IMG/VR virus record: IMGVR_UViG_3300048591_000147
Span: 124,001 to 188,000 of that record
Strand: one strand, 5' to 3'
Length of the DNA: 64,000 nt
Part shown: positions 31,657 through 49,576 of the stretch, piece after piece
Numbering within the stretch: the first letter of the stretch is position 1
How the letters are laid out: each line of letters begins with the position of its first letter
Notes under the pieces: model-generated
Database searches by the model: none
What the model was told of the DNA's origin: nothing
Seen by the model: the letters and a program-made list of their open reading frames with translations, nothing else
Translations under genes and position numbers: made by a program

Positions 31657-32289
31657 ATGAGAGAATCACTTCAACAATTTTACGATAAAGTATCTGGTAG
31701 ACAAGTATTTGTAATTGCTGGCGGGCCAACAGTGGCACAGCAGAATCTTGAATTACTTAAAGGTAAGAAGATCGTTTGCATAAACAATGCCTACAAACTA
31801 ATAGAAGATCCCGTTGCATTATATTGGGCCGATGAGCATTGGGCTAGTCAGCATGTGGACAACCTTCAGAAACATAAATGTAAGCATCGTTTTCATTCTA
31901 GATTCCACCTATCGCAACAGATTATAGACAAGGATATCAAAGGGGTGGGGAATTGTACACTACTTAAGCGTACTGCCGAATATGGTGTAGATCCTAATGT
32001 CAATCACGTATGCGGGAACAATGGCGGGGCTCAAGTATTGAACCTGTTATTGAATATGAAAGTGCGTGAAATTGTATTACTGGGATATGATATGAAATTG
32101 ATATCCAGTAAAAGTCATTGGCATGGTGGTCATGGTCTACCAATACGACCATGTGTGTATTTCAATTTTATCGAATCTGTAAAATCTATTGCTCCATTTT
32201 TGGAGAAAGCTAAGATCAATGTAATCAATACCTCTCCAAATACGGATTTGGATTGTTTTACTAAACACAAATTAGAGGATGTGGTATGA
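31657..32289 (+). CDS. Maf/MptE-like (GT29/GT42-related) glycosyltransferase-fold protein 1
   Basis: VIAGGPT, CINNAY, NNGGAQ...IVLLGYD, VINTS; TAAATA 31631; start moved to 31657. Confidence 0.7.
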   Translation: MRESLQQFYDKVSGRQVFVIAGGPTVAQQNLELLKGKKIVCINNAYKLIEDPVALYWADEHWASQHVDNLQKHKCKHRFHSRFHLSQQIIDKDIKGVGNCTLLKRTAEYGVDPNVNHVCGNNGGAQVLNLLLNMKVREIVLLGYDMKLISSKSHWHGGHGLPIRPCVYFNFIESVKSIAPFLEKAKINVINTSPNTDLDCFTKHKLEDVV

Positions 32290-32936
32290 ATCGTGGAATA
32301 GAATGGGGGCGAGTGACCCAACAGCACGATAATATTATTATAGTGTGTGGTGGTCGTAGTCTGAGTAAATTTGACTTTTCTTTGATTAAAGATCTCGGAA
32401 CTATCATAGTTGTAAATACTTCTTTCACTGTTGTTCCATTTGCTGACTATTGGTTCACTTTAGATATTACTGGCGTTCAACAGCCAACGTCTAGTAATTT
32501 TAGTGGAAAGTTATACGCAGCAGTACCACAAACTTATGGTACGCAAAATCAAGTAGTTACTAAAAATATAACATATCTACATCGGCTGATATCACACAAT
32601 GACCCCACAATCTCTAGTGAAAGCGCTTATGTAACTGGATTATCTGAAGACAATGGATGCATCAACACCGGAAACAGCGGATTTGGTGCTTTTGGTCTAG
32701 CATATCACATGAAACCTAAGAAAATATTAATATTGGGTATGGATGGAGATATCGGATACCACTATACCGATACGCGGAAGAATCGACCACTGACTTACTT
32801 ACCATTATTAATGAATTCAACAGTTGCTCAAATAAACAAGGCTAATATAAAAGTAATAAATGGTAGCATCAATAGTAGCATAACTGCATATCCTAAATAT
32901 TGTTTATCGGAAGCGTTGGGTGAATTTAGTAAATGA
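32286..32936 (+). CDS. Maf/MptE-like glycosyltransferase-fold protein 2
   Basis: IVCGGRSL, VVN, NSGFGAFGLAY...ILILGMD, VINGS. Confidence 0.7.
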   Translation: MNRGIEWGRVTQQHDNIIIVCGGRSLSKFDFSLIKDLGTIIVVNTSFTVVPFADYWFTLDITGVQQPTSSNFSGKLYAAVPQTYGTQNQVVTKNITYLHRLISHNDPTISSESAYVTGLSEDNGCINTGNSGFGAFGLAYHMKPKKILILGMDGDIGYHYTDTRKNRPLTYLPLLMNSTVAQINKANIKVINGSINSSITAYPKYCLSEALGEFSK

Positions 32937-34252
32937 ATAAAATACTGGCTGATTGTATTCAACATATACAACCATTAAGCGGTGATATAATAGATTTCAG
33001 GGTTGGTAATGGCGACATTTTTATTAAGTTGGTTAAAAACACCGTTAAAACTCCTAAGCATGTATGGGGCGTGACAAACTATTATGGTCTTGGTGGCCCA
33101 TCCCCAGAGGACATGAAAGATTATGTATCGCGTATGGCGCGACTGAAAAAATCTACACTATCTAAGCGTGAGCTAATTAATAAACTACATCGTAATATAT
33201 TCTTATGCAAGAATAAATTCACACTTATAGAAAATACGTCTTTTCAAAAAAGCCTACTGAGCATCCCGTCACATGTGAGGTTCAGTCTGGCGTATGTTGA
33301 CTTGCTTCAATATACGCCAACATTAATGGCGTTGGCGTTCTTAGAAGATCGTTTACAGCCTGACGGTCTAATAATTATTAATAACTATGATGCTAGTGAT
33401 AATCATGCCGCAAATAAAGCCGTAACGGAATTTATTACTACTCACGGCTACACTATATTACCATCAACAGACGCTGGAGTACTAATCATTATGCGCAGAC
33501 CTAACACCACTCCTATATCAGAACCAGCCATTGAAGTGGTCAACCCAGACGAGACAGTAATCCTTGAGCCAGAATACCACATCCAGCCAATGACCGAAAA
33601 ACTGACCGTTGCTTGTGTGCTTATGAATGGCGGCAAAGTATATGACTACAAATATGTCAACGCGCTGGCTAACGCAGTTGCTAAGAACGTAACTATCCCT
33701 TATACATTTACATGTCTCACTGATAACCCGCAAAACTTTAATAAAAATGTGCACAAGGTGATAAAATTAAAGCACGGCTTCCCAAAATGGTGGAGCAAAA
33801 TAGAACTATTCCGCCCTGATATTTTCGATGATACTGAACAAGTTTTCTTTTTAGATTTAGATACAGTAATAACCAATAACATCGATGATATAGTTTCATA
33901 CGATGGTAATTTTTGTGGTCTAAGGGATTTTTATAGAATAGTGTCATTAGGAAGCGGACTGTTGTCTTGGAAACCTTCAAACCATCACCACATTTATCAC
34001 AATTTTTTATTGAAGTCTGCAAACATAATTGCGAACACACCAGAAGGTGATCAGCGGTGGATAGACAGTCAGACCAGTAAAATGGACTATTTCCAAGACC
34101 TATTTGGAAGGAAAGTGATTTCTTGGAAGAAAGACTGCGTAATTAATAAAATGGTATCCGTCCCATTGTCCGCTTCAATAATATGTTTCCATGGCGTACC
34201 TAAACCACATGAAATATCACATAGCGCCATCGTATCTAACTGGCAACCATAA
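32933..34252 (+). CDS. Degenerate TylF-like methyltransferase domain fused to a GT-A (GT8-like) glycosyltransferase
   Basis: N-term GDIIDFRVGNG...LAYVD..QY...LQPDGLII; C-term WWSKIELF, FLDLDTVI (DxD), GDQ, CFHG.PKP. Confidence 0.75.
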   Translation: MNKILADCIQHIQPLSGDIIDFRVGNGDIFIKLVKNTVKTPKHVWGVTNYYGLGGPSPEDMKDYVSRMARLKKSTLSKRELINKLHRNIFLCKNKFTLIENTSFQKSLLSIPSHVRFSLAYVDLLQYTPTLMALAFLEDRLQPDGLIIINNYDASDNHAANKAVTEFITTHGYTILPSTDAGVLIIMRRPNTTPISEPAIEVVNPDETVILEPEYHIQPMTEKLTVACVLMNGGKVYDYKYVNALANAVAKNVTIPYTFTCLTDNPQNFNKNVHKVIKLKHGFPKWWSKIELFRPDIFDDTEQVFFLDLDTVITNNIDDIVSYDGNFCGLRDFYRIVSLGSGLLSWKPSNHHHIYHNFLLKSANIIANTPEGDQRWIDSQTSKMDYFQDLFGRKVISWKKDCVINKMVSVPLSASIICFHGVPKPHEISHSAIVSNWQP

Positions 34253-34280
34253 AGCTAAATATACAATAAAAAGAGATATC

Positions 34281-35333
34281 ATGGCAACTATAAATTATAA
34301 ATGTTCTATCTGTAAAAAAGAAGTTGAATTGTTAGAGAATTCAATAGGTTTAAATATAGTTGGCGCGTGTAGTCTCACGGACGGCTGTGGTGGTAAACTA
34401 TTACAATTAAAACGAAATCCATATAACATCAGAGAATCAATAAAATATTATAATGATGATCTATTGGAGTTCGACCCGCGTAATAAGTTTCATAAACACC
34501 TACAAACAAATAGAAATAATACATGGAATGTGACTCATAATCTAAACAACCATCCAATCGTTGTCGTGTTTGTTAAAGTCAATAATTCTAATATATTAGA
34601 AAAAATCGACAACTCCACATATACGGTGTCATACACCAATGAAAACTCATTAGTCATATCTGGTTTGTCTCAACAATATACTGGAATCGCTCACTGTATC
34701 GCTCGCACATCTTCGCCAAGTTCCACAATAATTGCGACACCAGCGACCGAATATTATCAAGTTACGACTGGCGGTACTTTTACCTTTGCCATACCGAAGT
34801 TGCTTACCAAATTTGACTACACACCAACTGTTACTCCTACTCCAACACTACCACTGGATTTATACAATCTAGGTGATATAAAGTTAGAGATAGGAATAAC
34901 TAGGCCCAATGAAGAGGAAATAGTTTGTTCTGAATTAGTACCAGTACCGCAGATATCTTCCCCGTGGATAAGCTGGGGTGAAATCATCATACGTAATAGA
35001 AGAAACTATTACATCAAAATGAAGAATATATTAAATTTCACAACTTTTGATGATAGTAATCTAACATTTGATGACATCCCAAATGGTACAAAGATACGAT
35101 TTTTGCGAATAGATTATGGTACTGGTGTGTATCAGAAGATCCCATCCAGAGGCGCGTTTTTGATGTTGAGTAAAGCACCATACTCATTAACTGATAAGAA
35201 TCTTAAACAGATCGTAGACTTGGGTGAAATATTAGAAAGTAAATATTGGTATTTGACCTATAATGATGGTGAGGTATACATTGAGTTGGACGCCGTTGAA
35301 AGTACTTACCCGGATATAAGGAAAGTAGCATAA
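34281..35333 (+). CDS. Putative virion structural protein
   Basis: TAAATA 34256; WNVTHNLNNHPIV beta motif typical of virion decoration proteins; short TPTVTPTPT patch. Confidence 0.6.
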   Translation: MATINYKCSICKKEVELLENSIGLNIVGACSLTDGCGGKLLQLKRNPYNIRESIKYYNDDLLEFDPRNKFHKHLQTNRNNTWNVTHNLNNHPIVVVFVKVNNSNILEKIDNSTYTVSYTNENSLVISGLSQQYTGIAHCIARTSSPSSTIIATPATEYYQVTTGGTFTFAIPKLLTKFDYTPTVTPTPTLPLDLYNLGDIKLEIGITRPNEEEIVCSELVPVPQISSPWISWGEIIIRNRRNYYIKMKNILNFTTFDDSNLTFDDIPNGTKIRFLRIDYGTGVYQKIPSRGAFLMLSKAPYSLTDKNLKQIVDLGEILESKYWYLTYNDGEVYIELDAVESTYPDIRKVA

Positions 35334-35890
35334 TGAATATTAGATTTACTAATGGATTGATTTATTCATGGGATCGAAAAAACAACCCATTAATACTGAG
35401 CGATGGCGTCGTATCTATTAAGACATTTAATAAGAAACCAATATCTGCATCGTTTGCACATGGTCCACGAGATTACTACGCAGAAATTCCTTCAGGTAGT
35501 TGGAATATAACAACCACAGAACGCACATGGTTAACAATAGTATTGGACAACTTTTCAAGTGAATTTATGTATGTTACTACCACAATTAATCCAACTAACA
35601 ACTATGGACCAGAGTTCCCAGATACACCTGTAATAGGTGAGTGCTTCTTTCATCATTTACACAACAGAATGTTTATTTGGTCTGGTGCAAAGTGGATAAA
35701 CATCATTCAAGTGACATTAGGATATGTAGAAAATAACAAAACATATCCAGAAAATTCTGGCACTCAGGTCGGATTGAACAAGGTATCATCACCAACTGCT
35801 ATTCTAAAAGATCAGGCAGGATTGCCAATAATAAAGTTTATGGACGAACACTATCACTATTTTTTGACTGAACGAGATAATAAAAAATAA
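35333..35890 (+). CDS. Putative virion structural protein
   Basis: Coupled in the late operon; P.IGECFF...MFIWSGAKW tail-fibre-like motif. Confidence 0.55.
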   Translation: MNIRFTNGLIYSWDRKNNPLILSDGVVSIKTFNKKPISASFAHGPRDYYAEIPSGSWNITTTERTWLTIVLDNFSSEFMYVTTTINPTNNYGPEFPDTPVIGECFFHHLHNRMFIWSGAKWINIIQVTLGYVENNKTYPENSGTQVGLNKVSSPTAILKDQAGLPIIKFMDEHYHYFLTERDNKK

Positions 35891-35891: not shown

Positions 35892-37634
35892 ATGAAAAAG
35901 AGAACTGGTGGGACGAATTTTAAATACGCTGATATACACTTCTATGTAGAAGCTGCTGAAGTGATTGATGCGCATAAGCTAATTTCATTGAATAGTGACG
36001 GTAAGGCTATCCTTGCTGATAATTCTATATCTAGAGCTATTGGCATGAGTGTTCAATATACTAATATAGGTGAAATGGTTAAGTTCGTTACATCTGGCGA
36101 AATCACCAATAAAGGTTGGATATTAGAATATCCATTGAATCATAAATTATTCTTAGGAGCATCTGGTAATTTTCTTCCCACTATCGACTCAGATCACATC
36201 ATACAGAAGATCGGTAGTGTTATATCACCTAATACTATAGAATTAGATGTTACCAACTATTTTATATTGAATCCTACTGCTACACCAATGTTTACTAGTA
36301 CTGCTACTCCTACTCCTACCGTTACGCCTACTGCGACAGTAACACCGACAATAACACCAACGATTACTGTAACTCCAACAACAACTCCAACGGTTACACC
36401 CACAATTACTCCAACGGTATCTGCTACGGTAACTCCAAGCGTGACAATGACACCTTCCATTACCCCTACGAATAGTATTGCGCCTACGTCCACACCTACC
36501 ATCACACCTACTATTAGCTTAACTCCAACGATTACACCTACAATGAGTTTGACACCTACTATCACCCCTACAAATGGCAGCATGCCAGAATTTATGGCAA
36601 TGGGCATATTTTCAAATGTGGGTGGAAACCCCCAACCATATTTGGCTAAAGTAAATTCTGACGCTTCATTTGATTCGTCATTCACCCCAATAGTAGACGG
36701 TACAATTCTATGCGGTGACAAACAAAGTGATGGAAAGATAATTATTTTCGGTGAACACCTGAACTATAACGGTATTCCAGTAACAAATTTAATGAGAATT
36801 AATACCGACAACACACTGGACAACACATTCTCATGCGCTATAACAGGTACGGTAAACGATATAAACGTTTTGGCTAGTGGAAAGATACTGATAGGTGGCA
36901 ATTTTACATTAGGAACGACAAGAAACTTTGCGAGACTAAACAGTGATGGTACATTAGATGAAACGTTCTACCTATTTGATGCGAACTTCAACGGGTATGT
37001 TTCTAGAATACTTGTTCTAACTGACAATAGCATTGTATTGTGTGGCACATTTACTACAATAACTGACACGGTTTCCAGAGTTTCTCTCGCCAAGTTCGAT
37101 GTTAATGGTGTAGTAGATGAGACATTTGATCTATTCATAGATGAATTATCTGGATTTACTACCGTTAATAGAGTTAGACAGAGAAGTGACGGCGACCTTA
37201 TTGTGTGTGGAGAATTCCAAAGAGTAGAAAGTAGCTTGTCTTATTTCTTACAGATTGAAGCGTCTGGAGCACCATATCTTGAGACATACATGGACGGCCC
37301 GGTGGCCGATTGCGACATACAATCAGATGATAAGGTGGTAATAATAGGTTCATTTACTGAAGTGGATACTATTGCTGTAGAGCATATCGCTAGAGTGGAT
37401 GCATTCGGTGCATTTGATGGTACGTTCCATTCGGCAAGTTTTGAGAATGGCGCACCATCTAATATTGAGATTATAACAGATGATTCTATTTTTGTATGGG
37501 GTGGATGGGAGACTACTGAGTTAGAAAATATTACTTATCTGGCTAGATATTATCCTACTGGATTTTTAAATGTTGGGTGGGATGCCAATATTGATTATTT
37601 CCTATCGACTAATGGATTTTTACATTTGGCATAA
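35892..37634 (+). CDS. Virion protein: capsid-cement-like N-domain, Thr/Pro mucin-like stalk, Delta-60-repeat beta-propeller
   Basis: ~100-aa TPT(I/V) run; repeats such as QSDGKIII.G, RLNSDGTLDETF. Confidence 0.75.
   Translation: MKKRTGGTNFKYADIHFYVEAAEVIDAHKLISLNSDGKAILADNSISRAIGMSVQYTNIGEMVKFVTSGEITNKGWILEYPLNHKLFLGASGNFLPTIDSDHIIQKIGSVISPNTIELDVTNYFILNPTATPMFTSTATPTPTVTPTATVTPTITPTITVTPTTTPTVTPTITPTVSATVTPSVTMTPSITPTNSIAPTSTPTITPTISLTPTITPTMSLTPTITPTNGSMPEFMAMGIFSNVGGNPQPYLAKVNSDASFDSSFTPIVDGTILCGDKQSDGKIIIFGEHLNYNGIPVTNLMRINTDNTLDNTFSCAITGTVNDINVLASGKILIGGNFTLGTTRNFARLNSDGTLDETFYLFDANFNGYVSRILVLTDNSIVLCGTFTTITDTVSRVSLAKFDVNGVVDETFDLFIDELSGFTTVNRVRQRSDGDLIVCGEFQRVESSLSYFLQIEASGAPYLETYMDGPVADCDIQSDDKVVIIGSFTEVDTIAVEHIARVDAFGAFDGTFHSASFENGAPSNIEIITDDSIFVWGGWETTELENITYLARYYPTGFLNVGWDANIDYFLSTNGFLHLA
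36273..36572 (+). repeat. Thr/Pro-rich tandem peptide repeat (TPTITPTVTP...)
   Basis: About 100 codons dominated by ACN/CCN with diversified third positions. Confidence 0.9.
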
Positions 37635-37696: not shown

Positions 37697-38485
37697 ATGA
37701 AATTTTACGGTGATATAGAATTAATAAACGGATCGATACTAAATCTCAAAGTTGAAGAACTTGAGACATTGGACGTCGATACTGTAGACACGAACCGCCT
37801 TGTTGTTCATAACGGTGCATTATACTTTAACAATGGAGTTGCATACTACCCATTGATGTTTGACAACTCATTTGATGAAAATCCATTGATAATGTCACTA
37901 GGACAAAATTGGCTCAACGAAAATCAATCATTTAATCCAGTACCATTCAATGATCTGGATAATGTTAGTGACCTAGTATCTACTGATAGTCTGTTTAATG
38001 TCATACAACAATTAGACAGCGCTATTTCTGCTTTAGAAATAAATTCTATATTTGATTTGTCGGATGCGACACAGTCAGCACCATTTGCTGAAGGCCAAAT
38101 TTTGTTATACGGTGTAGATTCATTTTTCAATCTACCGCTGCAAGATGCGTTCGATTCATATGTTCAATACAATATAACAGATGCTGAAGATTTCTCACTC
38201 AATGTCATTTTAACCGAGTCTGACATCATGACATGGGATGCTGATATTGGTAAGTTCACTAATACAAAAAGCTACTATACGTATTCAAGTGATGTATTAC
38301 AGGCGAGTTACACACTCGCCCATCATTTAGGAAAAAAGTATTGTATTGTTGAGGTTATAGACAAGACAACAAATTTGAAAATCCCTAGTGATCAATACAC
38401 TGTAGAATATTTCACGAATGACATCCTTGGCGTTGTACTTGATACGCCTGCCATAGCACACATAATCGTGTTTAGTTTATCTTGA
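37697..38485 (+). CDS. Putative virion structural protein (acidic)
   Basis: TAAATA 37664; C-terminal HHLGKKY decoration-type motif. Confidence 0.6.
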   Translation: MKFYGDIELINGSILNLKVEELETLDVDTVDTNRLVVHNGALYFNNGVAYYPLMFDNSFDENPLIMSLGQNWLNENQSFNPVPFNDLDNVSDLVSTDSLFNVIQQLDSAISALEINSIFDLSDATQSAPFAEGQILLYGVDSFFNLPLQDAFDSYVQYNITDAEDFSLNVILTESDIMTWDADIGKFTNTKSYYTYSSDVLQASYTLAHHLGKKYCIVEVIDKTTNLKIPSDQYTVEYFTNDILGVVLDTPAIAHIIVFSLS

Positions 38486-38699: not shown

Positions 38700-39556
38700 T
38701 CCGAAAATGGGTATACGATGGCTGGATGCGATTTATAATCAACTAGTTGGAAGTGTTCCACCTTCACCCAAGTCTCCAAATCATCTAAAGTCTTTATAGA
38801 CTCATCAATGATCAATTTTGGAGAACCACACGAATGTCTTGTAATTTGTTGTCGCATGCCTTCTACCTGATCTTGATATATGTGGATGTTCCATCCAAAG
38901 TGTGCCAGTTTACCCGGCTTAAATCCTGTTATCCTACATACTAACAACAGTAATAAAGCGTATGACGCAATATTATATGGACAGCCAAGTGGAACATCCA
39001 TGGATCTTTGGATCATACTAATATTTAGTTTGTCGCCCTCTATTCCAAACATATACATAAGATGACATGGCGCAAGAGCCATCTGGTCTATCTCTGCTGG
39101 ATTCCAATGAGTAACTATCAATCGTCTGTCGTCGTTTCGTGCTGACAATCTGTCTATTACCGATTTCAATTGGTCAACACTGCCGCCATCCGCCGCTTGC
39201 CACGATCTAGCTTGTACCCCGTAAATCCTTCCAAGATCGTCTTCACCACGTCTATTAGGATTTGCCAACCAATGTTTTGAGACATTTGCGTTAGCGTCCC
39301 ATATCTTAGTGCCAGCTTCTCTAAACTGGGCTGCGTTGTCGTAACCTCGTATAAATCCCAAAAGTTCTGCCACAATCGGATTTATGCTCATTTTTTTGGT
39401 TGTTAAGAGCGGGAAGTATCCATCTGATAGGTCGTAATTACTTAGATCACCAAAATACGTTATACAACGTTTCTTAGTACGCTCATTGAATGTTATCGAA
39501 CCTTCCTCCAATACCTTCTTACATAAATTTATGTACGTTTCATCAAAATTTGTCAT
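38696..39556 (-). CDS. thyA: Thymidylate synthase
   Basis: FPLLTTKK, DLGRIYGVQ, MALAPCH (catalytic Cys), QRSMD..LG.PYNIASY, HIY. Confidence 0.95.
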   Translation of the reverse strand: MTNFDETYINLCKKVLEEGSITFNERTKKRCITYFGDLSNYDLSDGYFPLLTTKKMSINPIVAELLGFIRGYDNAAQFREAGTKIWDANANVSKHWLANPNRRGEDDLGRIYGVQARSWQAADGGSVDQLKSVIDRLSARNDDRRLIVTHWNPAEIDQMALAPCHLMYMFGIEGDKLNISMIQRSMDVPLGCPYNIASYALLLLLVCRITGFKPGKLAHFGWNIHIYQDQVEGMRQQITRHSCGSPKLIIDESIKTLDDLETWVKVEHFQLVDYKSHPAIVYPFSE

Positions 39557-42465: not shown

Positions 42466-44130
42466 TCAATTGGTGTATTTGTCGTTCTCTCTTCTTGATT
42501 TAGGGGCGTAGTGGTACTTTCTGTGATGGTTGGTCAACGACATTAACAGACAGCCACTACGTATTTTATTTTCTTGTTGTAGTGATTCCACATGAGACAT
42601 CCAAGTCTGTTCGTAAGTGTGAGCCCATTTAGTGTCTAAGAATACTTTAGTATTGCCACTCTTATTAAAGACTAATGGCCAATTACAATAATGGTGGTGT
42701 CCTACTGAATATGGTAGGCTTTCATAAACATTAATATAATGTATCTTTGCTAATTTTTCGTCTTGTTTATGTATGGACGTAGTGAAATACTTTGATTTTC
42801 TTTCTTTCGGTACGTTATACCATGCCCAGTCTACAAAATTATCTCCGAAAAATTCTGAGAAAGAAGTCTTGAGATAATCCAAATTCTCATTCTGCATTAT
42901 AGTTATGCATTTGTTTAACCAATTTTTGTGATAGGTATTAAACCCAGACTTACATATGGTATTTGTAGTATGGAATAACATATCATCCTCAAACATTATA
43001 TAATATTCATGGCCACTTTCGTTAAAGTGTTCAGCTATGAACTGTCTGGCGCTATTGATACCAATGTTGTCAAATTTGAATTCCTCAAAATTATATTTGT
43101 CAAACAATTCTTTATATTGTGCACTTGTTGCTGCATCGGTTGAATTATTTACAACATATTTTTTACACGAATTGAATATTTCTGGGTATACAGCTACAAA
43201 GTTTTCAACCCAGTATTGAAATTGGTTAGGTAAATTATATGTTAACGCATATATCGCTGTCTGTTCAGAGTTACCAGAGACTTCCGAGTTCTTAACGTCT
43301 TCGAAGAATTTGCATACCAATCCGTTGCCTTCTATCATTCTGATGTTGCATAACTCTGGGTGCTTATATGTTATTAATGTGAACACACTTTCTTCCGTTC
43401 CCATCAACCCATCATCAAGCGTTGAAGCTAATAACTGGTAGTAGAGATTATTGATTTGTTCTATGTGGTATCTATTACCACCAAAGAATCCGCCTCTGGC
43501 CACATGTGTAGTATCAGTACCAGCATAACGATTCATACCAGCTTTAGTAAATCCATGCACTTCAATCTGTCCGTCATATGGGAAGCACACGTATAACATC
43601 TTGTTCAAATGTTTTATTAACTTTCTTTCAAAAAGCGGGAATTCCTTTTCGTTGAAATACTGGTCTAGGTTCACCGTGTTAGCTAAGCCGCTGTCTATCC
43701 AACAAAACATATTGGTCTTGAAATGGTTAAATATCGAACTATCGTTCAGCATGAACTGCTTTTGCATTGTTATTAGATTGTAGTGTTTTAACTTTGCTTG
43801 TGGGGATTGAGCCAGCCAGCCAGCTTGATTAAGCCATGCTTCAGTATTTCTAATCTTTTCAACTTGTTCTACAAATGGAAAAGATTCCAATTCTTTTAAA
43901 GATCTATTGATTATTTTGATATTTTCTTTTTTATGTGACTGTACGAACTCATTGAGAGATTCTTCACAATATACAACTAGATTTATATGCTGATACTTCA
44001 ATAGTTTAGAAAAACATTCTTTATAATGTTCAAAAGATCTAGAGAATCCGCTCGCTAAGTGCTCTCTACCAATGTCAAATAATGCAGTAACGAACGTTAT
44101 ATCTGATTTTTTCATCCTAATTAATTCCAA
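42466..44130 (-). CDS. HtrL/YibB-family domain fused to a C-terminal GT-A glycosyltransferase domain
   Basis: TFVTALFDIGR, WIDSG, GGFFGG, GTEESV; C-term YIMFEDD; TAAATA on - at 44139-44144. Confidence 0.75.
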   Translation of the reverse strand: MELIRMKKSDITFVTALFDIGREHLASGFSRSFEHYKECFSKLLKYQHINLVVYCEESLNEFVQSHKKENIKIINRSLKELESFPFVEQVEKIRNTEAWLNQAGWLAQSPQAKLKHYNLITMQKQFMLNDSSIFNHFKTNMFCWIDSGLANTVNLDQYFNEKEFPLFERKLIKHLNKMLYVCFPYDGQIEVHGFTKAGMNRYAGTDTTHVARGGFFGGNRYHIEQINNLYYQLLASTLDDGLMGTEESVFTLITYKHPELCNIRMIEGNGLVCKFFEDVKNSEVSGNSEQTAIYALTYNLPNQFQYWVENFVAVYPEIFNSCKKYVVNNSTDAATSAQYKELFDKYNFEEFKFDNIGINSARQFIAEHFNESGHEYYIMFEDDMLFHTTNTICKSGFNTYHKNWLNKCITIMQNENLDYLKTSFSEFFGDNFVDWAWYNVPKERKSKYFTTSIHKQDEKLAKIHYINVYESLPYSVGHHHYCNWPLVFNKSGNTKVFLDTKWAHTYEQTWMSHVESLQQENKIRSGCLLMSLTNHHRKYHYAPKSRRENDKYTN

Positions 44131-44155: not shown

Positions 44156-44887
44156 TTATACCACACTTGAGTAGAAATCAGAAAGCTTAAACGTCTTGTC
44201 CTCGTTAAATGGGCCATTGTCGTGTATTATTGCTGGCGCGTGTCTGGAAAATCCAGTGAATTTATTGTCTTTAATGTTTAGTAATTCGATTGATTCATGG
44301 GTACTGAAAAAGAGTTTTCGCTCATGATCCAATTTAATATCTGCACCATTAGTCAGATACAACCAAGTCCATGCGCCTTGGTCTTCCATTACACCATCTC
44401 TACCATGCGCGATAATTTTATCAAGCGCATCAACTATATGATCTCTTTTGCCTATGTAGGTGCCAGAATTTAGGTATGGGGTGTCCCATTCTTTAGTGTC
44501 ATACAAATGAGTGTATTTTGTGTTAGGCCACAAACCACGTTCTGCACCTATAACAATATTTGCATCGAAGGTGTGAAATTTGTTTAAAATATCATCCTTG
44601 TTTGTGACTATGCCAGTGTCCAATGCATCCATGAACAATAGATAATCGTTGTTTTTGATATGTTTAATTATGTTTTCTCTGAGCCTTATGATCTTATAGA
44701 AGAATAGTTTGGAATAATAATCGTTCTCATTGTTGCAGAATACTTTATACTCGTTGTCGGTATCGCTGTTATCTCTGAATACAATTATCTCATCATCGGC
44801 AAAACTCTTACGCGCCGATTTGTAAAAGATTGGCTGGATGTGATCTGGGTAGTTATATAGTACGGTGATTAAAATTAGGTTACTCAT
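44156..44887 (-). CDS. PLOD-type (procollagen lysyl hydroxylase N-domain) glycosyltransferase
   Basis: FMDALD, IGAERGLWP, YLNSGTYIG, EDQ, IKLD, IIHDNG. Confidence 0.75.
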   Translation of the reverse strand: MSNLILITVLYNYPDHIQPIFYKSARKSFADDEIIVFRDNSDTDNEYKVFCNNENDYYSKLFFYKIIRLRENIIKHIKNNDYLLFMDALDTGIVTNKDDILNKFHTFDANIVIGAERGLWPNTKYTHLYDTKEWDTPYLNSGTYIGKRDHIVDALDKIIAHGRDGVMEDQGAWTWLYLTNGADIKLDHERKLFFSTHESIELLNIKDNKFTGFSRHAPAIIHDNGPFNEDKTFKLSDFYSSVV

Positions 44888-44890: not shown

Positions 44891-45619
44891 TTATACCTCA
44901 TAAAAAGTTCTTTGTTTGTTGCTGTAGAAAATGAATGCGCCGCCCAACGTCTGTTTTATGTGGAATTTTATTCCAGCATCTAACGCTGCCATGCCGATTT
45001 CTAATCCTTCTGCGTATGCCATACCTTTGTCAGCCGTACATTTTCTTTCCAATTCTGCCCATGCCGTTATGAATTTACCGATTTTATCGTTTTTTTGGAA
45101 GATTAGATATTGTTCGTTTACTATCTGGCACTGATCATACTTGTCCGTTTTATCTAAACCATAAAATACTATTTTCTCTTGTGGTAAAAATGTGCGCTGC
45201 AATTTTTCATCAATTAGATGTCTACCTCTACCTGCCATACCGTCACATTTCATTGTCAGCATTTCTTGAATGCATGCCTCGAATTTTGAGATATTTGCGT
45301 CGAATTTAAGCAACCAATCACAGTCGATATACGCAATATACTTACAGTCCTCCGCATTTGCGAAAGATATTGGGACTAATTTCAGATTATAGTTGAAGTT
45401 CCTTACATGATCAGATAAATTACTTGTCCGAGAATATGACCTATCTAATTCTTTCAATATAAGTCGTTCACTCGACATGTTATTAAAATATGCGATATTG
45501 TCAGTCACGACCAATAGTCTGCTGTCAGTTTTCTTCTCTATAGTCTTAAATAAATTCTGCGCGTAACCATTATATTCGTTACCGACCGCTAAGGTACAGA
45601 ACAGTATATCATATTTCAT
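44891..45619 (-). CDS. GT-A glycosyltransferase
   Basis: TLAVGNEY, VVTD, YIDCD (DxD). Confidence 0.6.
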   Translation of the reverse strand: MKYDILFCTLAVGNEYNGYAQNLFKTIEKKTDSRLLVVTDNIAYFNNMSSERLILKELDRSYSRTSNLSDHVRNFNYNLKLVPISFANAEDCKYIAYIDCDWLLKFDANISKFEACIQEMLTMKCDGMAGRGRHLIDEKLQRTFLPQEKIVFYGLDKTDKYDQCQIVNEQYLIFQKNDKIGKFITAWAELERKCTADKGMAYAEGLEIGMAALDAGIKFHIKQTLGGAFIFYSNKQRTFYEV

Positions 45620-46605
45620 TAACCGATGACTCTATCAAAGAACTCTATAATCCTATCCGAATCATAGTATAATGGTAACTTATTATCATGAAAATATGGT
45701 TGTGACAGCATTTTCTTACATTTGGTATCGTCGCCGTCTATCGATTTTACAAATTCTCCGACGTCTTCAAACGATTTAAAGTCGTGGCAGTTTATAAAGC
45801 TTTCAGGGTTGAAATCGTCAGTAATACAATTATTACCATAGAATATAGGAATAGTATTTGCTGCGAATGCATGGACTATTTTTTCCTGAGTTAATTTTGG
45901 CGTGTTCGTATACTGGAATGCTATATTGAATTTGCATTCTTTGAAAAATTGGATTTTACTTCTGTATGTCAGCCCGTCTATCCTCCCATAATATTCTCTT
46001 CGAAGATAAGGATATTTTACAGGTTTCTCATGCTCTGACACGGTTGGTCGCCATGGACCAGAACTTTTGATTGGCTTATACTTCGCTAGTATATCAAACA
46101 GTCTGCCTCGGTCTGCATTATCACTTGCTTGAACCACTGAACAGAATTTCTTATATTGAGAGAACATATCGTCTACATTCTTTTCCCTTGTCATCCACGA
46201 AAAGGGTTCATCAAATATTCTACTTTCATCATATAATACCCATGTGTCCAATACATACGTAGGGAATTTGAGATATCTTGGATGATCGATGTCGGAAAAT
46301 CCTAGTGCGTAATGATTTGGAGAACTGTTCACGGTATCACGGTATGATGTTTCATTAAATAGCTCACCAGTGATAAACACCTTCTTGACGTGTTCCCCAT
46401 ATTCATCTATTTTTCTATTGTTGCCACCAGTGTAATAATCAAAATTCCCACCCTCATTATGGAAGTTGGTGTAGAATACTATATCTGGGTCGTGAGAATC
46501 TATGACAACATTATATTTTTTTGATAACACCCATTTGAAATAATTCATCCACGAGAACATGGAATCGATTGGGAAGTTGGTCCTACTTAATTTTATAGTT
46601 CTCAT
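45619..46605 (-). CDS. GT10 alpha-1,3-fucosyltransferase-like protein
   Basis: KVFITGE, KFCSVV, KFNIAFQ...TQEKIVHAF.A.TIPIFYG, DFNPESFIN. Confidence 0.82.
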   Translation of the reverse strand: MRTIKLSRTNFPIDSMFSWMNYFKWVLSKKYNVVIDSHDPDIVFYTNFHNEGGNFDYYTGGNNRKIDEYGEHVKKVFITGELFNETSYRDTVNSSPNHYALGFSDIDHPRYLKFPTYVLDTWVLYDESRIFDEPFSWMTREKNVDDMFSQYKKFCSVVQASDNADRGRLFDILAKYKPIKSSGPWRPTVSEHEKPVKYPYLRREYYGRIDGLTYRSKIQFFKECKFNIAFQYTNTPKLTQEKIVHAFAANTIPIFYGNNCITDDFNPESFINCHDFKSFEDVGEFVKSIDGDDTKCKKMLSQPYFHDNKLPLYYDSDRIIEFFDRVIG

Positions 46606-46614
46606 TTAAAACCC

Positions 46615-47832
46615 TTACATGAATGTTATGCCGGTGCCAGTAATATGACCCAGCAGAGTGATGTCTAATTTATTATTTAGTCCATTCCAGAATGTGCTCA
46701 TATTATCATTCAAATGGATATCGTCCCAGACCACAATACCTCGGTAGCCTATATTCTTTAAATGGTCGTAGAACTGACGCTCAAACACACCGTCATGCAT
46801 TGTATCCACCACTATAAATTTAGCTAATAATAACAACTCTACAAACTTTTCAGACATCACGCTATCCGTGATAAATTTGCCCTTATAGATCTCTTCTAAT
46901 TTGTTATATGTGCTAAATCGACTGACATCAAACGACACTACAGAATTATTATTGGTCGCTAGCGCTACGTGACTTGCACCATAATATGCGCCAACTTCGA
47001 CCACTACAGAATTGGTATACTGTGAAGACAATTTTCTTAGCAGTCTATAATGTTCTGCGCCAGCCCGTAATTTGAAATACTCCGAAGGTACACCAACCTG
47101 ATTCAATATATTAAAGTCGTCTTCCATATTAATAGAATCTAACTCAGTCTTTATTTGCTCTAGTGTTTCCATGTGTGGAAATATCTTTCGATATTCGTCA
47201 AACGCTTCTGCACGTTGGGCCGCTTCTCTTTTTTTACACACCCAGACGACCGGATCAAACACTTCTTTATTATAGCTAACAAGATTATACAATTTACAAA
47301 CACCACTAATATGCTTTTCTTCTATTTCACACCAATTCCATATTTTGTCCAAGAAATTGTTTTGAAAATTTTCATGAGTGTCAACATAATCATGCGCCAT
47401 TATAAAATCGCCAACCTTCAAGAATTTGGAGAAGATGGCGAATTCGCCTTGTTTATATCCACCATCACATAGCACGAGTGTTACTCCGGGTGATTGTATA
47501 TACTCTTTGACAAATGTTTCGTCTTTAAGATCCGTATACGCATGTGTGAATATATTCTCAATTCTAATGTCAATATTGGCATCTCTTAATTGTGGATAAT
47601 ACGGGCGACTCTCAATATCATATGATATAATTTGTGTATCGCTTAACCCAAGGGAATTCAAATGTTCTCTAATGCCAAGAATCAAACCGCCACAGGCAGT
47701 GCCTATTTCCAACACTCTAACGGGTCTAATGTCCGCAAGAAAGTCGTAGAACACATCTAATGCATTTCTATGCTGTTGCGCCGTATATCCTTTGTAAAGT
47801 GTGTTACCAGTAACTGGTAAATCGTTGCTCAT
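46615..47832 (-). CDS. Tandem class I SAM-dependent methyltransferase domains (Methyltransf_24/CmcI-like)
   Basis: VLEIGTACGG...CDGG...AHD and VEVGAYYGAS...VDTMH...VWDD. Confidence 0.78.
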   Translation of the reverse strand: MSNDLPVTGNTLYKGYTAQQHRNALDVFYDFLADIRPVRVLEIGTACGGLILGIREHLNSLGLSDTQIISYDIESRPYYPQLRDANIDIRIENIFTHAYTDLKDETFVKEYIQSPGVTLVLCDGGYKQGEFAIFSKFLKVGDFIMAHDYVDTHENFQNNFLDKIWNWCEIEEKHISGVCKLYNLVSYNKEVFDPVVWVCKKREAAQRAEAFDEYRKIFPHMETLEQIKTELDSINMEDDFNILNQVGVPSEYFKLRAGAEHYRLLRKLSSQYTNSVVVEVGAYYGASHVALATNNNSVVSFDVSRFSTYNKLEEIYKGKFITDSVMSEKFVELLLLAKFIVVDTMHDGVFERQFYDHLKNIGYRGIVVWDDIHLNDNMSTFWNGLNNKLDITLLGHITGTGITFM

Positions 47833-47851
47833 AATTTATATCCGCTATTAG

Positions 47852-49576
47852 TTAAGTAGTAATTGGCTCTTCAACTCTATCTAGCCATCCATGTGAAATG
47901 CTATGCGGCCATACGATATATGAGGTTGGATCTGAGTTGGACATAAATGTTAAATTCATCTTGAATCTTTCACTGTTTGCCTTAATACATCTCTTAATCT
48001 CTAATTGATTTAAGTCCTTTCTATAGATTTCCTTGCCGGATGAGTCATTAACCGCTAACACCCAGCAATTATAATCTGTTAATAGTTCTTTACCCCCTGA
48101 GTTATTGGTGGCCTTAATTTTGTCCATGTCCATGTTTATTGTGACAATATGTCTTGTCACTGGACGTGATTTTCTGATTACATCTTTATGTTCATTACAC
48201 TGGCGAGTAACTCTATGTAACCACCCTTTTGATACACTATGAGGCTGAATGACATATGATGCTGGATATTCATTAGCTAAAAATATAGATCGATAGTCTA
48301 CCCATTCCACTTTACCTGACGTATATCGTTTAATCTCGTTAGGTAATATATCCTTTCGATGGATTTCTTTTCCATCCACGTCATATACTGCAACCATCCA
48401 ACAATTATAATCATCTAAGAAAACCTTTTTACCATTTTCATCAGTTGACTTTAACTCATTTACATGTACACAAATATGAATATCTCTTGACCCACATAAC
48501 TCATCATTCCACTCTTCTTCTGGCTTATTCACTATTGGTAGTACTGGTAATTTCTTTTCTAAAGCATCCTTATGCACTGCACGCTTTTTAAATGATAGTC
48601 CAGCATATCGTTCATAGTCCTGCAACGTTCTTACATCACCGAACCCATATTTACCAAAATCTATTTGTTTTGGATCTTCTCCATCCATGCCAAATAGTAT
48701 TCTATTACGCTTATGACATTTGTCATTGCGCTCTACCCAATGTAGATCGGTCTTACCTTTCTCTTTCAATGACTGGGTATGATCGTCCCATACTTTTGTT
48801 CTACCTTTTCGGGTATATTCATGCCAGCAGATTAGTCTATGTGGATGATATAGATCATATCCATGTGTAAACGCCCTCGCGGCTATTGATATCTCTTCAC
48901 CATGAAAGAAATATTCAGGGTCGTGCTGAACTTCTACTGCAAATGAGCCGTCCGCAAATGCGAAATGTCCTGAATAAAATCTAGCCAAAATAGGCTCTGA
49001 TAATTCTTTCCAATCGTCAATTGACGCTGGCATAAAAAATACGGCCCCTTCTGGTATGAATCTATCAAAGTCCATCTTCCATGGTATGTTAATTCTACCA
49101 TTTGGTTCATTCTCTGGGTCATATGAAGATACGTAACCAGTTAATACAGGCTTTTTTGATTTCGAACGTAAGCTTTCCAACATTTCAATTGCAACCTCAT
49201 CCCAATTCTCAACAAATCTGTGATGCGAGTCTAACTGTAATGTGTATGTTTCATCATGATATAACTGCTGGATTAGATTTCTAGCCCAACACGCGCCTTT
49301 ACTTTTTTCGAATGGAACATCTATAAGAATTATCGTAGCATACGATTTGTTTAATACGATGGTATCGAAGCCTTGGGCATCGAGGTTGTTCTGAATTACA
49401 CCATCTATGGTGAATTCATGTTTTAAGAAATCTTCAATAGTCTGCTCATCACCGTGCTGCCAGTTTACCACTATGTGTAGCCTATGTGATTCTGATGCTT
49501 TTGATATTATATCATTTAATGTTGGTATTAATTCTGGGTCGCGGTATGCTGCTATTTGTACGAAGATTGTTGTCAT
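47852..49576 (-). CDS. Gnt1-type polypeptide GlcNAc transferase (GT60/PF11397-like) with a duplicated C-terminal domain
   Basis: TIFVQIAAYRD.E, KGACWAR, LQLDSHHRF, FF.GEE...R.FT.GYD.Y.P, G.G..RTL.DY. Confidence 0.85.
   Translation of the reverse strand: MTTIFVQIAAYRDPELIPTLNDIISKASESHRLHIVVNWQHGDEQTIEDFLKHEFTIDGVIQNNLDAQGFDTIVLNKSYATIILIDVPFEKSKGACWARNLIQQLYHDETYTLQLDSHHRFVENWDEVAIEMLESLRSKSKKPVLTGYVSSYDPENEPNGRINIPWKMDFDRFIPEGAVFFMPASIDDWKELSEPILARFYSGHFAFADGSFAVEVQHDPEYFFHGEEISIAARAFTHGYDLYHPHRLICWHEYTRKGRTKVWDDHTQSLKEKGKTDLHWVERNDKCHKRNRILFGMDGEDPKQIDFGKYGFGDVRTLQDYERYAGLSFKKRAVHKDALEKKLPVLPIVNKPEEEWNDELCGSRDIHICVHVNELKSTDENGKKVFLDDYNCWMVAVYDVDGKEIHRKDILPNEIKRYTSGKVEWVDYRSIFLANEYPASYVIQPHSVSKGWLHRVTRQCNEHKDVIRKSRPVTRHIVTINMDMDKIKATNNSGGKELLTDYNCWVLAVNDSSGKEIYRKDLNQLEIKRCIKANSERFKMNLTFMSNSDPTSYIVWPHSISHGWLDRVEEPITT

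Follow-up and report, generated by a model that had tools for sequence, protein, structure and literature searches.

We analyzed a window of 64,000 nucleotides (positions 124,001 to 188,000 of IMG/VR record IMGVR_UViG_3300048591_000147), which belongs to the 315-kb genome of a wastewater jumbo myophage distantly related to Xanthomonas phage XacN1. This window carries nine genes encoding about twelve predicted sugar-adding and sugar-modifying domains, distributed in two clusters next to tail-fibre-like genes with Thr/Pro-rich (T/P) linkers. The genes and features of the locus are as follows:

31629-31641 (plus strand): promoter-like 13-mer CATAAATATTGAA, 16 nt upstream of the first gene of cluster 1
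31657-32289 (plus): small MptE/WaaZ-like ("Maf-like") putative ulosonic-acid-type glycosyltransferase 1
32286-32936 (plus): small MptE/WaaZ-like putative glycosyltransferase 2
32933-34252 (plus): fusion of a TylF-type sugar O-methyltransferase (N-terminal) and a GT-A glycosyltransferase (C-terminal)
34281-35333 (plus): fibre-anchor family protein, corresponding to the conserved N-terminal domain of large T/P-linker proteins in relatives
35333-35890 (plus): 185-aa protein of the fibre-like block without family hit
35892-37634 (plus): T/P-repeat protein with an N-terminal domain, a ~100-aa TPTxTPT linker (about nt 36273-36575) and a C-terminal DUF5122 beta-propeller; candidate acceptor
37697-38485 (plus): 262-aa protein, possibly structural, with its own ATAAATA site at -34
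41265-42455 (plus): conserved neighbour of the glycan locus (phrog_11259), with a non-enzyme-like beta-rich fold
42466-44130 (minus): core enzyme 2, an HtrL/YibB-like domain plus a second GT-A domain with an EDD motif (HtrL_GT)
44156-44887 (minus): variable cassette, PLOD-type GT-A glycosyltransferase
44891-45619 (minus): variable cassette, GT-A fold glycosyltransferase with a DCD motif
45619-46605 (minus): variable cassette, GT10 fucosyltransferase-like enzyme
46615-47832 (minus): variable cassette, two-domain SAM methyltransferase (CmcI/rhamnosyl O-methyltransferase type)
47852-49576 (minus): core enzyme 1, PF11397/GT60-type putative polypeptide GlcNAc transferase
49593-49619 (no strand): GC-rich, terminator-like hairpin with T-runs on both sides, between the 136-aa ORF and GT60
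49647-50057 (minus): conserved 136-aa ORF directly upstream of GT60 in all relatives
50082-50094 (minus): second copy of the 13-mer CATAAATATTGAA, upstream of the 136-aa ORF

The observation made in the preliminary description was confirmed: all nine genes, their domain assignments and the ~100-residue T/P repeat are located where it had placed them. In cluster 2, the GT60-type enzyme matched PF11397 "GlcNAc" (3.1e-79; 267 bits against a cut-off of 21) and phrog_24687 (3e-181), it carries an invariant LDSHHRF motif and an alignment showed that its C-terminal domain of ~115 aa is tandemly duplicated. The methyltransferase matched PF04989 (1.6e-5) and presents a second GxG-type SAM motif in its C-terminal half; this protein is split into two ORFs in L017 (L numbers designate the individual loci that we compared). 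The GT10 enzyme matched PF00852 (1.7e-9; 38 bits against a cut-off of 23.9) as well as FucT_N, and its best PDB hit was the H. pylori alpha-1,3-FucT (3e-18). The DCD-motif protein yielded no Pfam hit but its neighbours in the Atlas structure search were GT-A, GT8, GT6 and Nucleotid_trans-like, and its family is also present in XacN1, L012, L014, L017 and L018. The PLOD GT domain matched PF25342 (3.3e-22), with PDB hits to mimivirus R699 (4e-10) and human LH3 (2e-6). Finally, HtrL_GT matched PF09612 (3.9e-20), with weak TAGT and phrog_842 hits on residues 334-457.

In cluster 1, the two small proteins matched phrog_4603 (3.6e-34) and phrog_2111 (3e-40), respectively. Their Pfam matches to MptE-like are weak (about 1e-3, below the cut-off; 1.6e-3 for the first protein, which also matched NCBIfam WaaZ_KDO_III at 5e-3), but the Atlas structure search gave TM values of 0.76-0.79 to MptE-like/WaaZ_KDO_III clusters. 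These proteins, initially described as Maf-like, are minimal MptE/WaaZ-like domains and not members of the Maf family. Homologues of the first protein precede the fibre genes in XacN1 and Xoo-sp13. The third gene combines a TylF methyltransferase (PF05711; 4.1e-5; 23.4 bits against a cut-off of 23) with the phrog_1962 glycosyltransferase (3e-37 on residues 225-435) and showed a weak PDB hit to the Skp1 alpha-galactosyltransferase Gat1 (7e-3). No enzyme of the two clusters has a predicted membrane segment. We found no sugar-nucleotide synthesis family in 35 further ORFs of the window, although this search covers only 64 kb of the 315-kb genome and does not inform on the supply of GDP-fucose and CMP-ulosonate.

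We then examined the genes located next to the clusters. The actual start of the 380-aa ORF is at 34281. This fibre-anchor protein belongs to a family with 331 representatives in our library, and its AF2 model has a pLDDT of 90.7. Its N-terminal module of ~75 aa is shared with phage tail fibre, tailspike and Mtd-N proteins in BFVD, and the protein is homologous to the N-termini of XacN1 ORF370/372 and Xoo-sp13_332, which lie upstream of the tail sheath genes. The 185-aa protein has only a weak homologue, next to the fibre-anchor gene in L007. In the T/P-repeat protein, the repeat covers residues ~128-228 and is followed by the DUF5122 beta-propeller (PF17164; 1.2e-38), but this specific protein has no homologue in the phage collection and its location in the virion is inferred from synteny and fold only. 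The 262-aa protein weakly matched phrog_16122 "virion structural protein" (1.2e-4); it has homologues next to T/P-rich ORFs in L011 and L012 and is not related to the tail sheath stabiliser of XacN1. The phrog_11259 protein (8.7e-107; hereafter p11259) is present beside HtrL_GT in 12 phage loci and is fused to a T/P-rich protein of 1699 aa in L019, but its AF2 model is poor, with only weak FliD-head-like hits.

The motif upstream of these genes is ATAAATA rather than the plain TAAATA initially reported for both clusters. Indeed, TAAATA is not enriched in the window (66 sites against 83 expected), whereas 16 of the 24 ATAAATA sites of the window lie 13-41 nt upstream of ORF starts on the same strand. 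The exact 13-mer occurs only twice in the window, both times upstream of ORF starts. Cluster 1 shares an operon-like block with the fibre-like genes behind this late-type promoter motif, which the replication genes lack. However, the site preceding GT60 lies at -61 and is followed by the terminator-like hairpin, so that late co-expression of cluster 2 is not established.

The comparison of 15 related phage loci revealed a conserved core surrounding a variable cassette. GT60 and HtrL_GT are conserved in these loci, as are, in most of them (L017 is the exception), the flanking polymerase-side genes, and the 136-aa ORF shows 38-55% identity in 15 loci. The stretch between the two core genes spans 0-4 kb and contains a carbamoyltransferase (6 loci), a polysaccharide pyruvyl transferase (3 loci), FkbM/RfbT-type or CmcI-type methyltransferases, and GT10 plus PLOD GT (the window and L017, the only loci in which the PLOD GT was found), while L013 and L016 have nothing between the two core genes. 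This is the pattern of a surface glycan under diversifying selection. T/P linkers are also a trait of this clade: T/P-rich stretches occur in fibre-like ORFs of XacN1 (five ORFs), Xoo-sp13 (two ORFs) and 7 distinct UViG loci. In the fibre-anchor family, 37 of 47 long members present a T/P stretch (at about residue 345-400) against 5 of 103 short members, and this stretch typically starts right after the anchor domain.

We further tested whether GT60 co-occurs with T/P-repeat proteins, as the preliminary description had suggested, and the result was positive in related phages and across bacteria. Of 80 bacterial GT60 loci, 24 have a T/P-rich ORF within 8 kb, and 13 of 26 order-level groups are positive. 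P/T is the dominant low-complexity type (24, against 4 for the next type). By gene rank from GT60, T/P-rich ORFs represent 25 of 279 at ranks 1-2 and 3 of 344 at ranks 3 and beyond (odds ratio 11.2; P = 7e-7; Fisher test), although these loci are phylogenetically related and the P-value overstates their independence. The other 56 loci, including all 7 Gemmatimonadales loci, show no T/P neighbour within 8 kb, and T/P linkers are common in secreted and fibre proteins generally. The carriers are unrelated proteins: T6SS VgrG spikes with a (PT)n tail, crAss muzzle-like proteins, Rv2525c-like hydrolases, T9SS cargo, fn3 and LamG proteins. The T/P stretch is the only feature that they share. HtrL_GT is adjacent to or near the GT60 homologue in all phage loci and in 27 of 80 bacterial loci, and L044 repeats the XacN1 layout (GT60, carbamoyltransferase, HtrL_GT) beside a T/P-rich gene.

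The interpretation initially given, a eukaryote-like O-glycosylation pathway bracketing a mucin-like virion protein, is only partly supported by these results. A multi-enzyme glycan-building pathway is present, but the term "eukaryote-like" is overstated since PF11397 homologues at 35-56% identity are common in bacterial chromosomes and more than 6,800 metagenomic proteins match the family (a lower bound). The bracketing layout is not universal: the two clusters lie about 30 kb apart in XacN1, and thymidylate synthase and other unrelated genes sit between them in the window. The recurring feature is the T/P linker and not the specific T/P protein. The proposed order of initiation, extension, fucosylation and methylation, as well as the acceptor residue, are inferred.

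Several alternative explanations were considered. It is possible, although unlikely, that the enzymes glycosylate virion or other phage proteins of which the T/P linkers are not the acceptor, such as the major capsid protein, a decoration protein or p11259, and that T/P linkers are ordinary flexible spacers. p11259 is an invariant neighbour of the locus and is fused to a large T/P-bearing protein in L019, the glycoprotein bands of XacN1 are unidentified, and the glycans of mycobacteriophages sit on capsid and tail-tube C-termini and not on linkers (as summarised in PMC12619734). However, this does not explain why unrelated T/P-rich proteins cluster within two genes of GT60 homologues across 13 bacterial order-level groups, and p11259 has no homologue beside the bacterial GT60 genes. 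Alternatively, the clusters might remodel a host envelope glycan (LPS core or O-antigen, capsule, exopolysaccharide) during infection, for instance to block superinfection or to aid release, which we consider more doubtful still. HtrL/YibB is an E. coli protein family of unknown function whose gene lies beside the LPS core genes, WaaZ-like, RfbT-like, pyruvyl- and carbamoyl-transferases are typical polysaccharide-tailoring enzymes, and the variable cassette resembles O-antigen loci. In contrast, neither cluster contains a flippase, a polymerase, an undecaprenyl-phosphate transferase or a membrane segment, the characterised members of the PF11397 family have only polypeptide acceptors, and the locus is conserved in lytic jumbo phages next to structural genes and is linked to T/P-rich proteins. 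Finally, hypermodification of phage DNA (glycosylated hydroxymethyl-pyrimidines) to evade restriction is very unlikely: phage glycosyltransferases building multi-sugar DNA glycans are known, a thymidylate-synthase-family gene is a conserved neighbour and the C-terminal domain of HtrL_GT weakly matched TET-associated glycosyltransferase (1.4e-3) and the T-even beta-glucosyl-HMC alpha-glucosyltransferase PHROG (2.4e-4), but these hits cover only the generic DxD region, the thymidylate synthase is canonical (TIGR03284, 228 bits against a cut-off of 108; best PDB hits to ThyA at 1e-58; conserved catalytic Cys-His and Asn motifs), no hydroxymethylase, TET/JBP or base kinase is in the window, and the DNA of XacN1, which has the same GT60 plus HtrL_GT core, is cut by BssHII, NaeI and SpeI.

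With moderate confidence, our results are best explained by a cytoplasmic protein O-glycosylation system of the phage, which most likely acts on T/P linkers of virion fibres. Virion glycosylation is already known; XacN1 virions show two PAS-positive bands and phage-encoded glycosylation was already proposed by its authors (PMC5852040). GT60 enzymes are polypeptide alpha-GlcNAc transferases that start mucin-type O-glycans on Ser/Thr-rich domains in protists (PMC8724618), and the activity of the phage and bacterial homologues is inferred here from this family precedent. Our analysis establishes the domain identities, the architecture of a core with a variable cassette and the genomic linkage of GT60 homologues to T/P-rich proteins, whereas every step of the mechanism, including donor and acceptor, is inferred. 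In this view, the soluble GT60-type enzyme would transfer a first sugar during late infection, by family precedent GlcNAc from host UDP-GlcNAc, to Thr residues of T/P-rich linkers in fibre-like virion proteins, and the acceptor in this genome would be the TPTxTPT stretch of 35892-37634. The bifunctional HtrL_GT, the invariant partner of GT60, would extend this core, and the swappable cassette (here the PLOD-type GT, the DxD GT-A, the GT10 fucosyltransferase-like enzyme and the double O-methyltransferase) would tailor the glycan. Cluster 1, directly upstream of the fibre genes, would add further sugars or make a second glycan, and nothing ties the two clusters to a single one. The outcome would be a strain-variable glycan coat on flexible fibre linkers, giving protease and shear protection and changed surface recognition.

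We first verified the gene content of the two clusters. The observation made in the preliminary description holds, since every gene and domain that it named is present in the sequence:

31657-32289, plus strand: cluster 1, protein of ~210 aa with a strong match to phrog_4603
32286-32936, plus strand: cluster 1, protein of ~210 aa with a strong match to phrog_2111
32933-34252, plus strand: cluster 1, fusion of a TylF-type methyltransferase to a glycosyltransferase
34281-35333, plus strand: fibre-anchor family protein, not named in the preliminary description
35892-37634, plus strand: protein with a Thr/Pro (T/P) repeat at residues ~128-228, followed by a DUF5122 beta-propeller
42466-44130, minus strand: cluster 2, HtrL_YibB domain plus a second GT-A-like domain with an EDD motif (hereafter HtrL_GT)
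44156-44887, minus strand: cluster 2, PLOD-type glycosyltransferase (GT)
44891-45619, minus strand: cluster 2, protein without Pfam hit but with a DCD motif and GT-A neighbours in the Atlas
45619-46605, minus strand: cluster 2, GT10 fucosyltransferase-like protein
46615-47832, minus strand: cluster 2, CmcI-type methyltransferase with a second SAM-type GxG motif in its C-terminal half
47852-49576, minus strand: cluster 2, PF11397 'GlcNAc' protein (hereafter GT60)

We then compared each protein to the thresholds of the families to which it might belong. GT60 matches PF11397 over profile positions 1-351 of 352 (3.1e-79, 267.4 bits against a cut-off of 21). Its LDSHHRF motif, of the metal-binding DxH/DxD type and presumably corresponding to the catalytic motif of GT60 enzymes, is invariant in 11 phage and metagenomic sequences. 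The ~115-aa C-terminal domain of this protein is tandemly duplicated (residues ~345-460 and 460-574) in this phage and in two close metagenomic relatives (P0002 and P0003), while the other phage homologues have one copy; this domain could be an acceptor-binding module. The GT10 protein matches the family catalytic domain (PF00852, 38 bits against a cut-off of 23.9) and its best solved relative is the alpha-1,3-fucosyltransferase of H. pylori (3.2e-18 over residues 61-301, with the conserved (T/Q)EK and IPI(Y/F)(W/Y)G region), whereas FucT_N scores 25.3 bits, just below its cut-off of 27.2. The PLOD-type protein matches PF25342 (79.3 bits against a cut-off of 27), with mimivirus R699 as the best solved relative (4e-10) and a further match to LH3 (2e-6). 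Full PLOD enzymes also carry a 2OG-Fe(II) hydroxylase domain, which is absent from this 243-aa protein, so it has a PLOD-type GT fold but is not a PLOD enzyme. HtrL_GT scores 73 bits against PF09612 (cut-off of 24.1) but remains below the NCBIfam equivalog thresholds (69.6 against 264.9 and 50.3 against 342), and represents a distant family member fused to a second GT-A-like domain. Sequence searches of the PDB with GT60 and HtrL_GT returned no hits, and a megablast of cluster 2 against the phage collection returned no match.

The two small proteins of cluster 1 had been described as Maf-like. However, they score 18.6 and 19.4 bits against PF01973 (MptE-like; cut-off of 34.6) and, with only ~210 aa, they lack the multi-domain architecture of Maf flagellin glycosyltransferases. 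Their fold-level similarity to MptE-like/WaaZ_KDO_III clusters (TM 0.76-0.79) indicates a resemblance at the superfamily level only. The candidate mucin-like region consists of ~100 aa of TPTxTPT repeats and reaches up to 78% T+P+S in a 40-aa window. None of 35 further ORFs in the window matches a sugar-nucleotide synthesis family and none of the enzymes has a hydrophobic segment typical of a membrane span.

The DNA polymerase of this phage (IMG/VR contig UViG_3300048591_000147, 314,956 bp) is 41-43% identical to those of the jumbo myophages Xanthomonas XacN1 and Xoo-sp13 and Stenotrophomonas CM1 and RAS14. The locus retrieved with the GT60 protein is 100% identical to the window. Public runs holding the sequence are wastewater metagenomes; those labelled 'RNA-Seq' look like DNA at low depth and say nothing about transcription. 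The G+C content is 0.36-0.40, except for positions 1-6600 where it reaches 0.48-0.51. This stretch holds only small plus-strand ORFs (100-290 aa), no rRNA or tRNA, and has no match in the phage collection, and it may be a recently acquired island or an assembly join. Outside the clusters, the window also contains an RNA-repair-like gene set (7132-8220, 14925-16238, 22067-23656, 24220-24393 and 40301-41251) comprising a CCA-adding/poly(A) polymerase family enzyme, an RNA ligase, a phrog_850 RNA-binding protein, tRNA-Gly and tRNA-Ser, and an RlaP nucleotidyltransferase. Between ThyA and the RlaP gene lies a 248-aa ORF (39553-40299) whose only family hits are very weak, to a TIM-barrel (PRAI-like) family.

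We further searched for promoter motifs. The T4 late promoter octamer TATAAATA was found at only 2 sites against 6.9 expected, and plain TAAATA, the motif of the preliminary description, at 66 sites against 83 expected, so that neither is enriched. In contrast, of the 24 occurrences of ATAAATA on both strands, 16 lie 13-41 nt upstream of an ORF start on the same strand. This motif precedes the first cluster-1 gene, a 262-aa ORF, the conserved neighbour p11259 (phrog_11259), HtrL_GT and the 136-aa ORF upstream of GT60, but it is absent from the polymerase, RNase H, RNR and ThyA genes. The exact 13-mer CATAAATATTGAA occurs only twice, before cluster 1 and before the 136-aa ORF. These results suggest that cluster 1 and the fibre-like block probably share a late-type promoter. 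For cluster 2 this is less clear: the site nearest GT60 lies at -61 and is followed by a strong terminator-like hairpin with T-runs on both sides (49593-49619), located before the GT60 start codon, which could terminate the transcript of the upstream 136-aa ORF or attenuate cluster 2.

To analyze the architecture of the locus, we compared fifteen related phage loci, plus XacN1 and Xoo-sp13. The order around cluster 2 is conserved in most of them: polymerase-side genes, the 136-aa ORF, GT60, a variable stretch, HtrL_GT, p11259 on the opposite strand and, usually, ThyA. One exception is locus L017, which lacks the polymerase-side genes and p11259, and in which the CmcI-type methyltransferase is split into two ORFs. 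The variable stretch is 0-4 kb long and holds different glycan-tailoring genes in different phages: a NodU/CmcH-type carbamoyltransferase (six loci, including XacN1 ORF333), a polysaccharide pyruvyl transferase (three loci), FkbM/RfbT-type or CmcI-type methyltransferases, the DxD GT-A family, and GT10 plus PLOD GT (only the window and L017). In loci L013 and L016 nothing lies between GT60 and HtrL_GT. Occasional endonuclease-like inserts were also found: Vsr/MTES_1575 endonuclease-like ORFs lie inside the cassette of two related phages (L015, 12007-12849; L019, 11402-13054) and may be homing endonucleases that help exchange it. A fixed two-enzyme core with a swappable tailoring cassette is the signature of a conserved glycan core whose outer decoration varies between strains. 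The DNA polymerase gene of some relatives (L007, 1810-5457; L008-L010, 2307-5448; L019, 2189-5365) is split into two ORFs or enlarged to 1,215 aa, which suggests an intein or an intervening element.

The ORF following cluster 1 starts at 34281, because all 150 homologues compared begin at query residue 31. It belongs to a family of 331 cluster representatives, which are either ~340-aa proteins or the N-terminal domain of proteins of up to 1,439 aa. Members include XacN1 ORF370 and ORF372 and Xoo-sp13_332, whose genes follow the cluster-1 homologues and lie upstream of the tail sheath genes. Of 47 family members longer than 420 aa, 37 carry a T/P-rich stretch, typically starting at residue 345-400, directly after the conserved domain, whereas only 5 of 103 short members have one. 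The domain has four nearly invariant N-terminal cysteines (zinc-ribbon-like). Its predicted structure is confident (pLDDT 90.7) but has no PDB match below E = 0.1, although its N-terminal ~75 residues superpose on the N-terminal modules of phage tail fibre, tailspike, collagen-like and Mtd-type proteins in BFVD. T/P-rich stretches also occur in XacN1 ORF325, 350 and 369, in Xoo-sp13_331 and in seven distinct UViG loci; in L019, one is fused to a p11259-like domain. The T/P protein of the window itself has no homologue in the phage collection and shares only repeat similarity with XacN1 ORF369, and its virion location is inferred. The recurring element is the linker, not this protein. We also found that the 262-aa ORF is not the tail sheath stabiliser of XacN1.

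The preliminary description had set the co-occurrence of GT60 with T/P-repeat proteins as a test of its model. A scan of one genome per bacterial species returned 80 loci with PF11397 homologues at 35-56% identity, from Burkholderiales, Gemmatimonadota, Bacteroidota, Verrucomicrobiota, Acidobacteriota, Actinomycetota, Planctomycetota and others. An HtrL_GT homologue lies next to or near the GT60 gene in 27 of them. A T/P-rich ORF of at least 150 aa occurs within 8 kb in 24 of the 80 loci, while the remaining 56 are negative within this reach. Two internal controls were used in place of a genome-wide background rate. First, among 710 ORFs, P/T is by far the commonest two-residue low-complexity type (24, against 4 for E/P and 3 for G/R). 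Second, T/P-rich ORFs are concentrated at gene ranks 1-2 from the GT60 gene (25 of 279, against 3 of 344 at ranks 3 and beyond; odds ratio 11.2; P = 7e-7; Fisher test). The loci are not phylogenetically independent, however, and some of the MAG contigs may be viral. Positive loci fall in 13 of 26 order-level groups, and on a FastTree of 91 GT60 sequences, none of them eukaryotic, they are scattered, with at least 12 changes forced by well-supported branches.

Pfam searches confirmed that the T/P-rich ORFs are real proteins from unrelated families: T6SS VgrG spikes with a C-terminal (PT)n tail of ~130 residues (Ralstonia, Paraburkholderia, Achromobacter, Cupriavidus), crAss muzzle-like proteins, Rv2525c-like hydrolase-domain proteins, T9SS cargo, and fn3 and LamG proteins. 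In Burkholderiales and a Neisseriaceae genome (Ralstonia sp. 25C locus L024, 461-13134; also loci L023, L026, L031 and L072), the GT60 homologue lies inside a T6SS cluster (ImpE, TssE, TssF and ImpA; DotU and OmpA-like in L023), beside an Rhs toxin gene and a VgrG spike with such a tail. The crAss muzzle-like neighbours were found in a Saprospiraceae and a Planctomycetaceae MAG (L062, 316-7948; L069, 7502-9265); these 'bacterial' loci may be prophages or mis-binned phage contigs, and they point to a second phage lineage with the same association. The Rv2525c-like glycoside-hydrolase-domain proteins, with long T/P-rich regions, lie directly upstream of the GT60 homologue and in the same orientation in three distant bacteria (L089, 3643-8001; L096, 4388-7996; L097, 6856-7980). 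Finally, the Jiulongibacter locus L044 repeats the XacN1 layout (GT60, carbamoyltransferase, HtrL_GT) beside a small T/P-rich protein. The only feature that these neighbours share is the T/P stretch, and we take this as the strongest available evidence that the T/P stretch is the acceptor.

GT60 enzymes are polypeptide alpha-GlcNAc transferases that initiate mucin-type O-glycans on Ser/Thr-rich domains of protists, and one of them, Gnt1, acts in the cytoplasm on Skp1 hydroxyproline (PMC8724618). The domain assignments, the conserved core with its variable cassette and the genomic linkage to T/P-rich proteins were established here from sequence, whereas the enzymatic activities, the acceptor and the order of the steps in the phage are inferred. 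In the model that we favor with moderate confidence, the putatively soluble GT60 enzyme would start the glycan on Thr of T/P linkers of fibre proteins as they fold in the cytoplasm; no prolyl hydroxylase is present in the window, which favors Thr over hydroxyproline. HtrL_GT would then extend the core, and the cassette enzymes would add hexose and fucose and O-methylate. The cluster-1 enzymes may add an acidic sugar and a methylated sugar, as their nearest named folds use CMP-ulosonic acids. Donors would come from the host, at least as far as this window shows. External support comes from XacN1, whose virions give two periodate-Schiff-positive bands and whose authors proposed phage-encoded glycosylation (PMC5852040). 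The interpretation of the preliminary description is partly supported, but its label 'eukaryote-like' is not justified, because the closest relatives of the phage enzyme are bacterial: in the tree, which holds no eukaryotic sequences, the phage clade groups with the T6SS-associated Burkholderiales genes (support 96).

Alternatively, a different protein acceptor, such as the capsid or p11259, remains possible; the predicted structure of p11259 was too poor to interpret (pLDDT 54.7), with only weak FliD-like matches. It is also possible that the clusters remodel the host envelope, which cannot be excluded, but there are no lipid-carrier, flippase or membrane components in either cluster. Glycosylation of phage DNA is unlikely, since the neighbouring ThyA is a canonical thymidylate synthase, no hydroxymethylase or TET is present in the window, the TAGT (1.4e-3 over 35 residues, below its cut-off) and beta-glucosyl-HMC hits are weak and cover only the DxD region, and XacN1 DNA is cut by BssHII, NaeI and SpeI (PMC5852040).

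We compared this locus to the closest described systems. As in protist mucin-type initiation (Dictyostelium and T. cruzi pp-alphaGlcNAcT; the Skp1 Gnt1 pathway), a PF11397 enzyme, predicted to be soluble like cytoplasmic Gnt1, is accompanied by a Thr-rich repeat as candidate acceptor and by extension and fucosylation-type enzymes, and one cluster-1 domain weakly resembles Gat1 of the Skp1 pathway. However, the phage enzyme carries the extra ~115-aa C-terminal domain. XacN1 belongs to the same phage clade (DNA polymerase 43%, GT60 56% identity) and presents the same GT60 plus HtrL_GT core and the same cluster 1 before the fibre genes. Only two GTs were recognised in that phage, its cassette holds a carbamoyltransferase instead of the fucosyltransferase, PLOD GT and methyltransferases, its two clusters lie about 30 kb apart, and neither the T/P linkers nor the acceptor were discussed (Yoshikawa et al. 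2018, PMC5852040). In mycobacteriophages, phage-encoded GTs reportedly modify virion proteins in the cytoplasm and the glycan acts as a surface shield (Freeman et al. 2023, as cited in PMC12619734). The GT families differ, the acceptors are the C-termini of capsid and tail-tube subunits rather than T/P linkers of fibres, and those loci appear to be small, with one to a few GTs and no variable cassette.

The serine-rich repeat adhesin islands of Gram-positive bacteria offer an analogy only: a cytoplasmic initiating O-GlcNAc transferase (GtfA/GtfB) acts on a long hydroxy-amino-acid repeat encoded in the same locus and is followed by a strain-variable set of extending GTs, but the initiating enzyme is unrelated (GT4, against PF11397), the repeats are Ser-rich and export depends on an accessory Sec system. 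Giant viruses (PBCV-1 capsid glycans; mimivirus fibril glycans with R699/L230-type PLOD-like enzymes) also possess virus-encoded, host-independent multi-GT pathways that include sugar methylation. Those are eukaryotic viruses that often encode their own sugar-nucleotide synthesis, which is absent from this window, and their acceptors and glycan structures are unrelated. Virion glycosylation by virus-encoded enzymes is a known phenomenon (mycobacteriophages, chloroviruses, mimivirus); what is new here is the GT60 plus HtrL_GT core, the hypervariable cassette, the T/P-linker association across phages and bacteria, and the link to T6SS clusters. Literature searches for GT60 or PF11397 in phages or bacteria, and for VgrG glycosylation, found nothing relevant.

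More tentatively, PF11397/GT60 enzymes, usually paired with an HtrL/GT-A partner, may be a widespread and so far unstudied class of cytoplasmic polypeptide O-glycosyltransferases in prokaryotes and phages. They would write mucin-type glycans on Thr/Pro-rich linkers of machines and proteins that are assembled in the cytoplasm and then exposed outside the cell, such as jumbo-phage fibres, crAss-like muzzle proteins, T6SS VgrG spikes with (PT)n tails and TAT/T9SS cargo. In phages, a swappable tailoring cassette would make the coat strain-variable. In this view, the protist mucin-initiating enzymes would be one branch of this older family.

Virion glycosylation by phage-encoded enzymes has been characterised only in a few actinophages and was hinted at for XacN1. 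If the fibre-linker model is right, it would define a large, environmentally abundant glycosylation system of jumbo phages infecting Gram-negative hosts (more than 6,800 homologues, as a lower bound), with a recognisable acceptor signature (T/P linkers) and a conserved two-enzyme core that are amenable to study in a cultured relative (XacN1 on Xanthomonas citri). It would also give the first functional handle on bacterial PF11397 genes, including those inside T6SS clusters next to VgrG spikes with long (PT)n tails. Finally, it would bear on phage stability, host recognition and immune recognition in phage biocontrol, and would inform the origin of protist mucin-type O-GlcNAc initiation.
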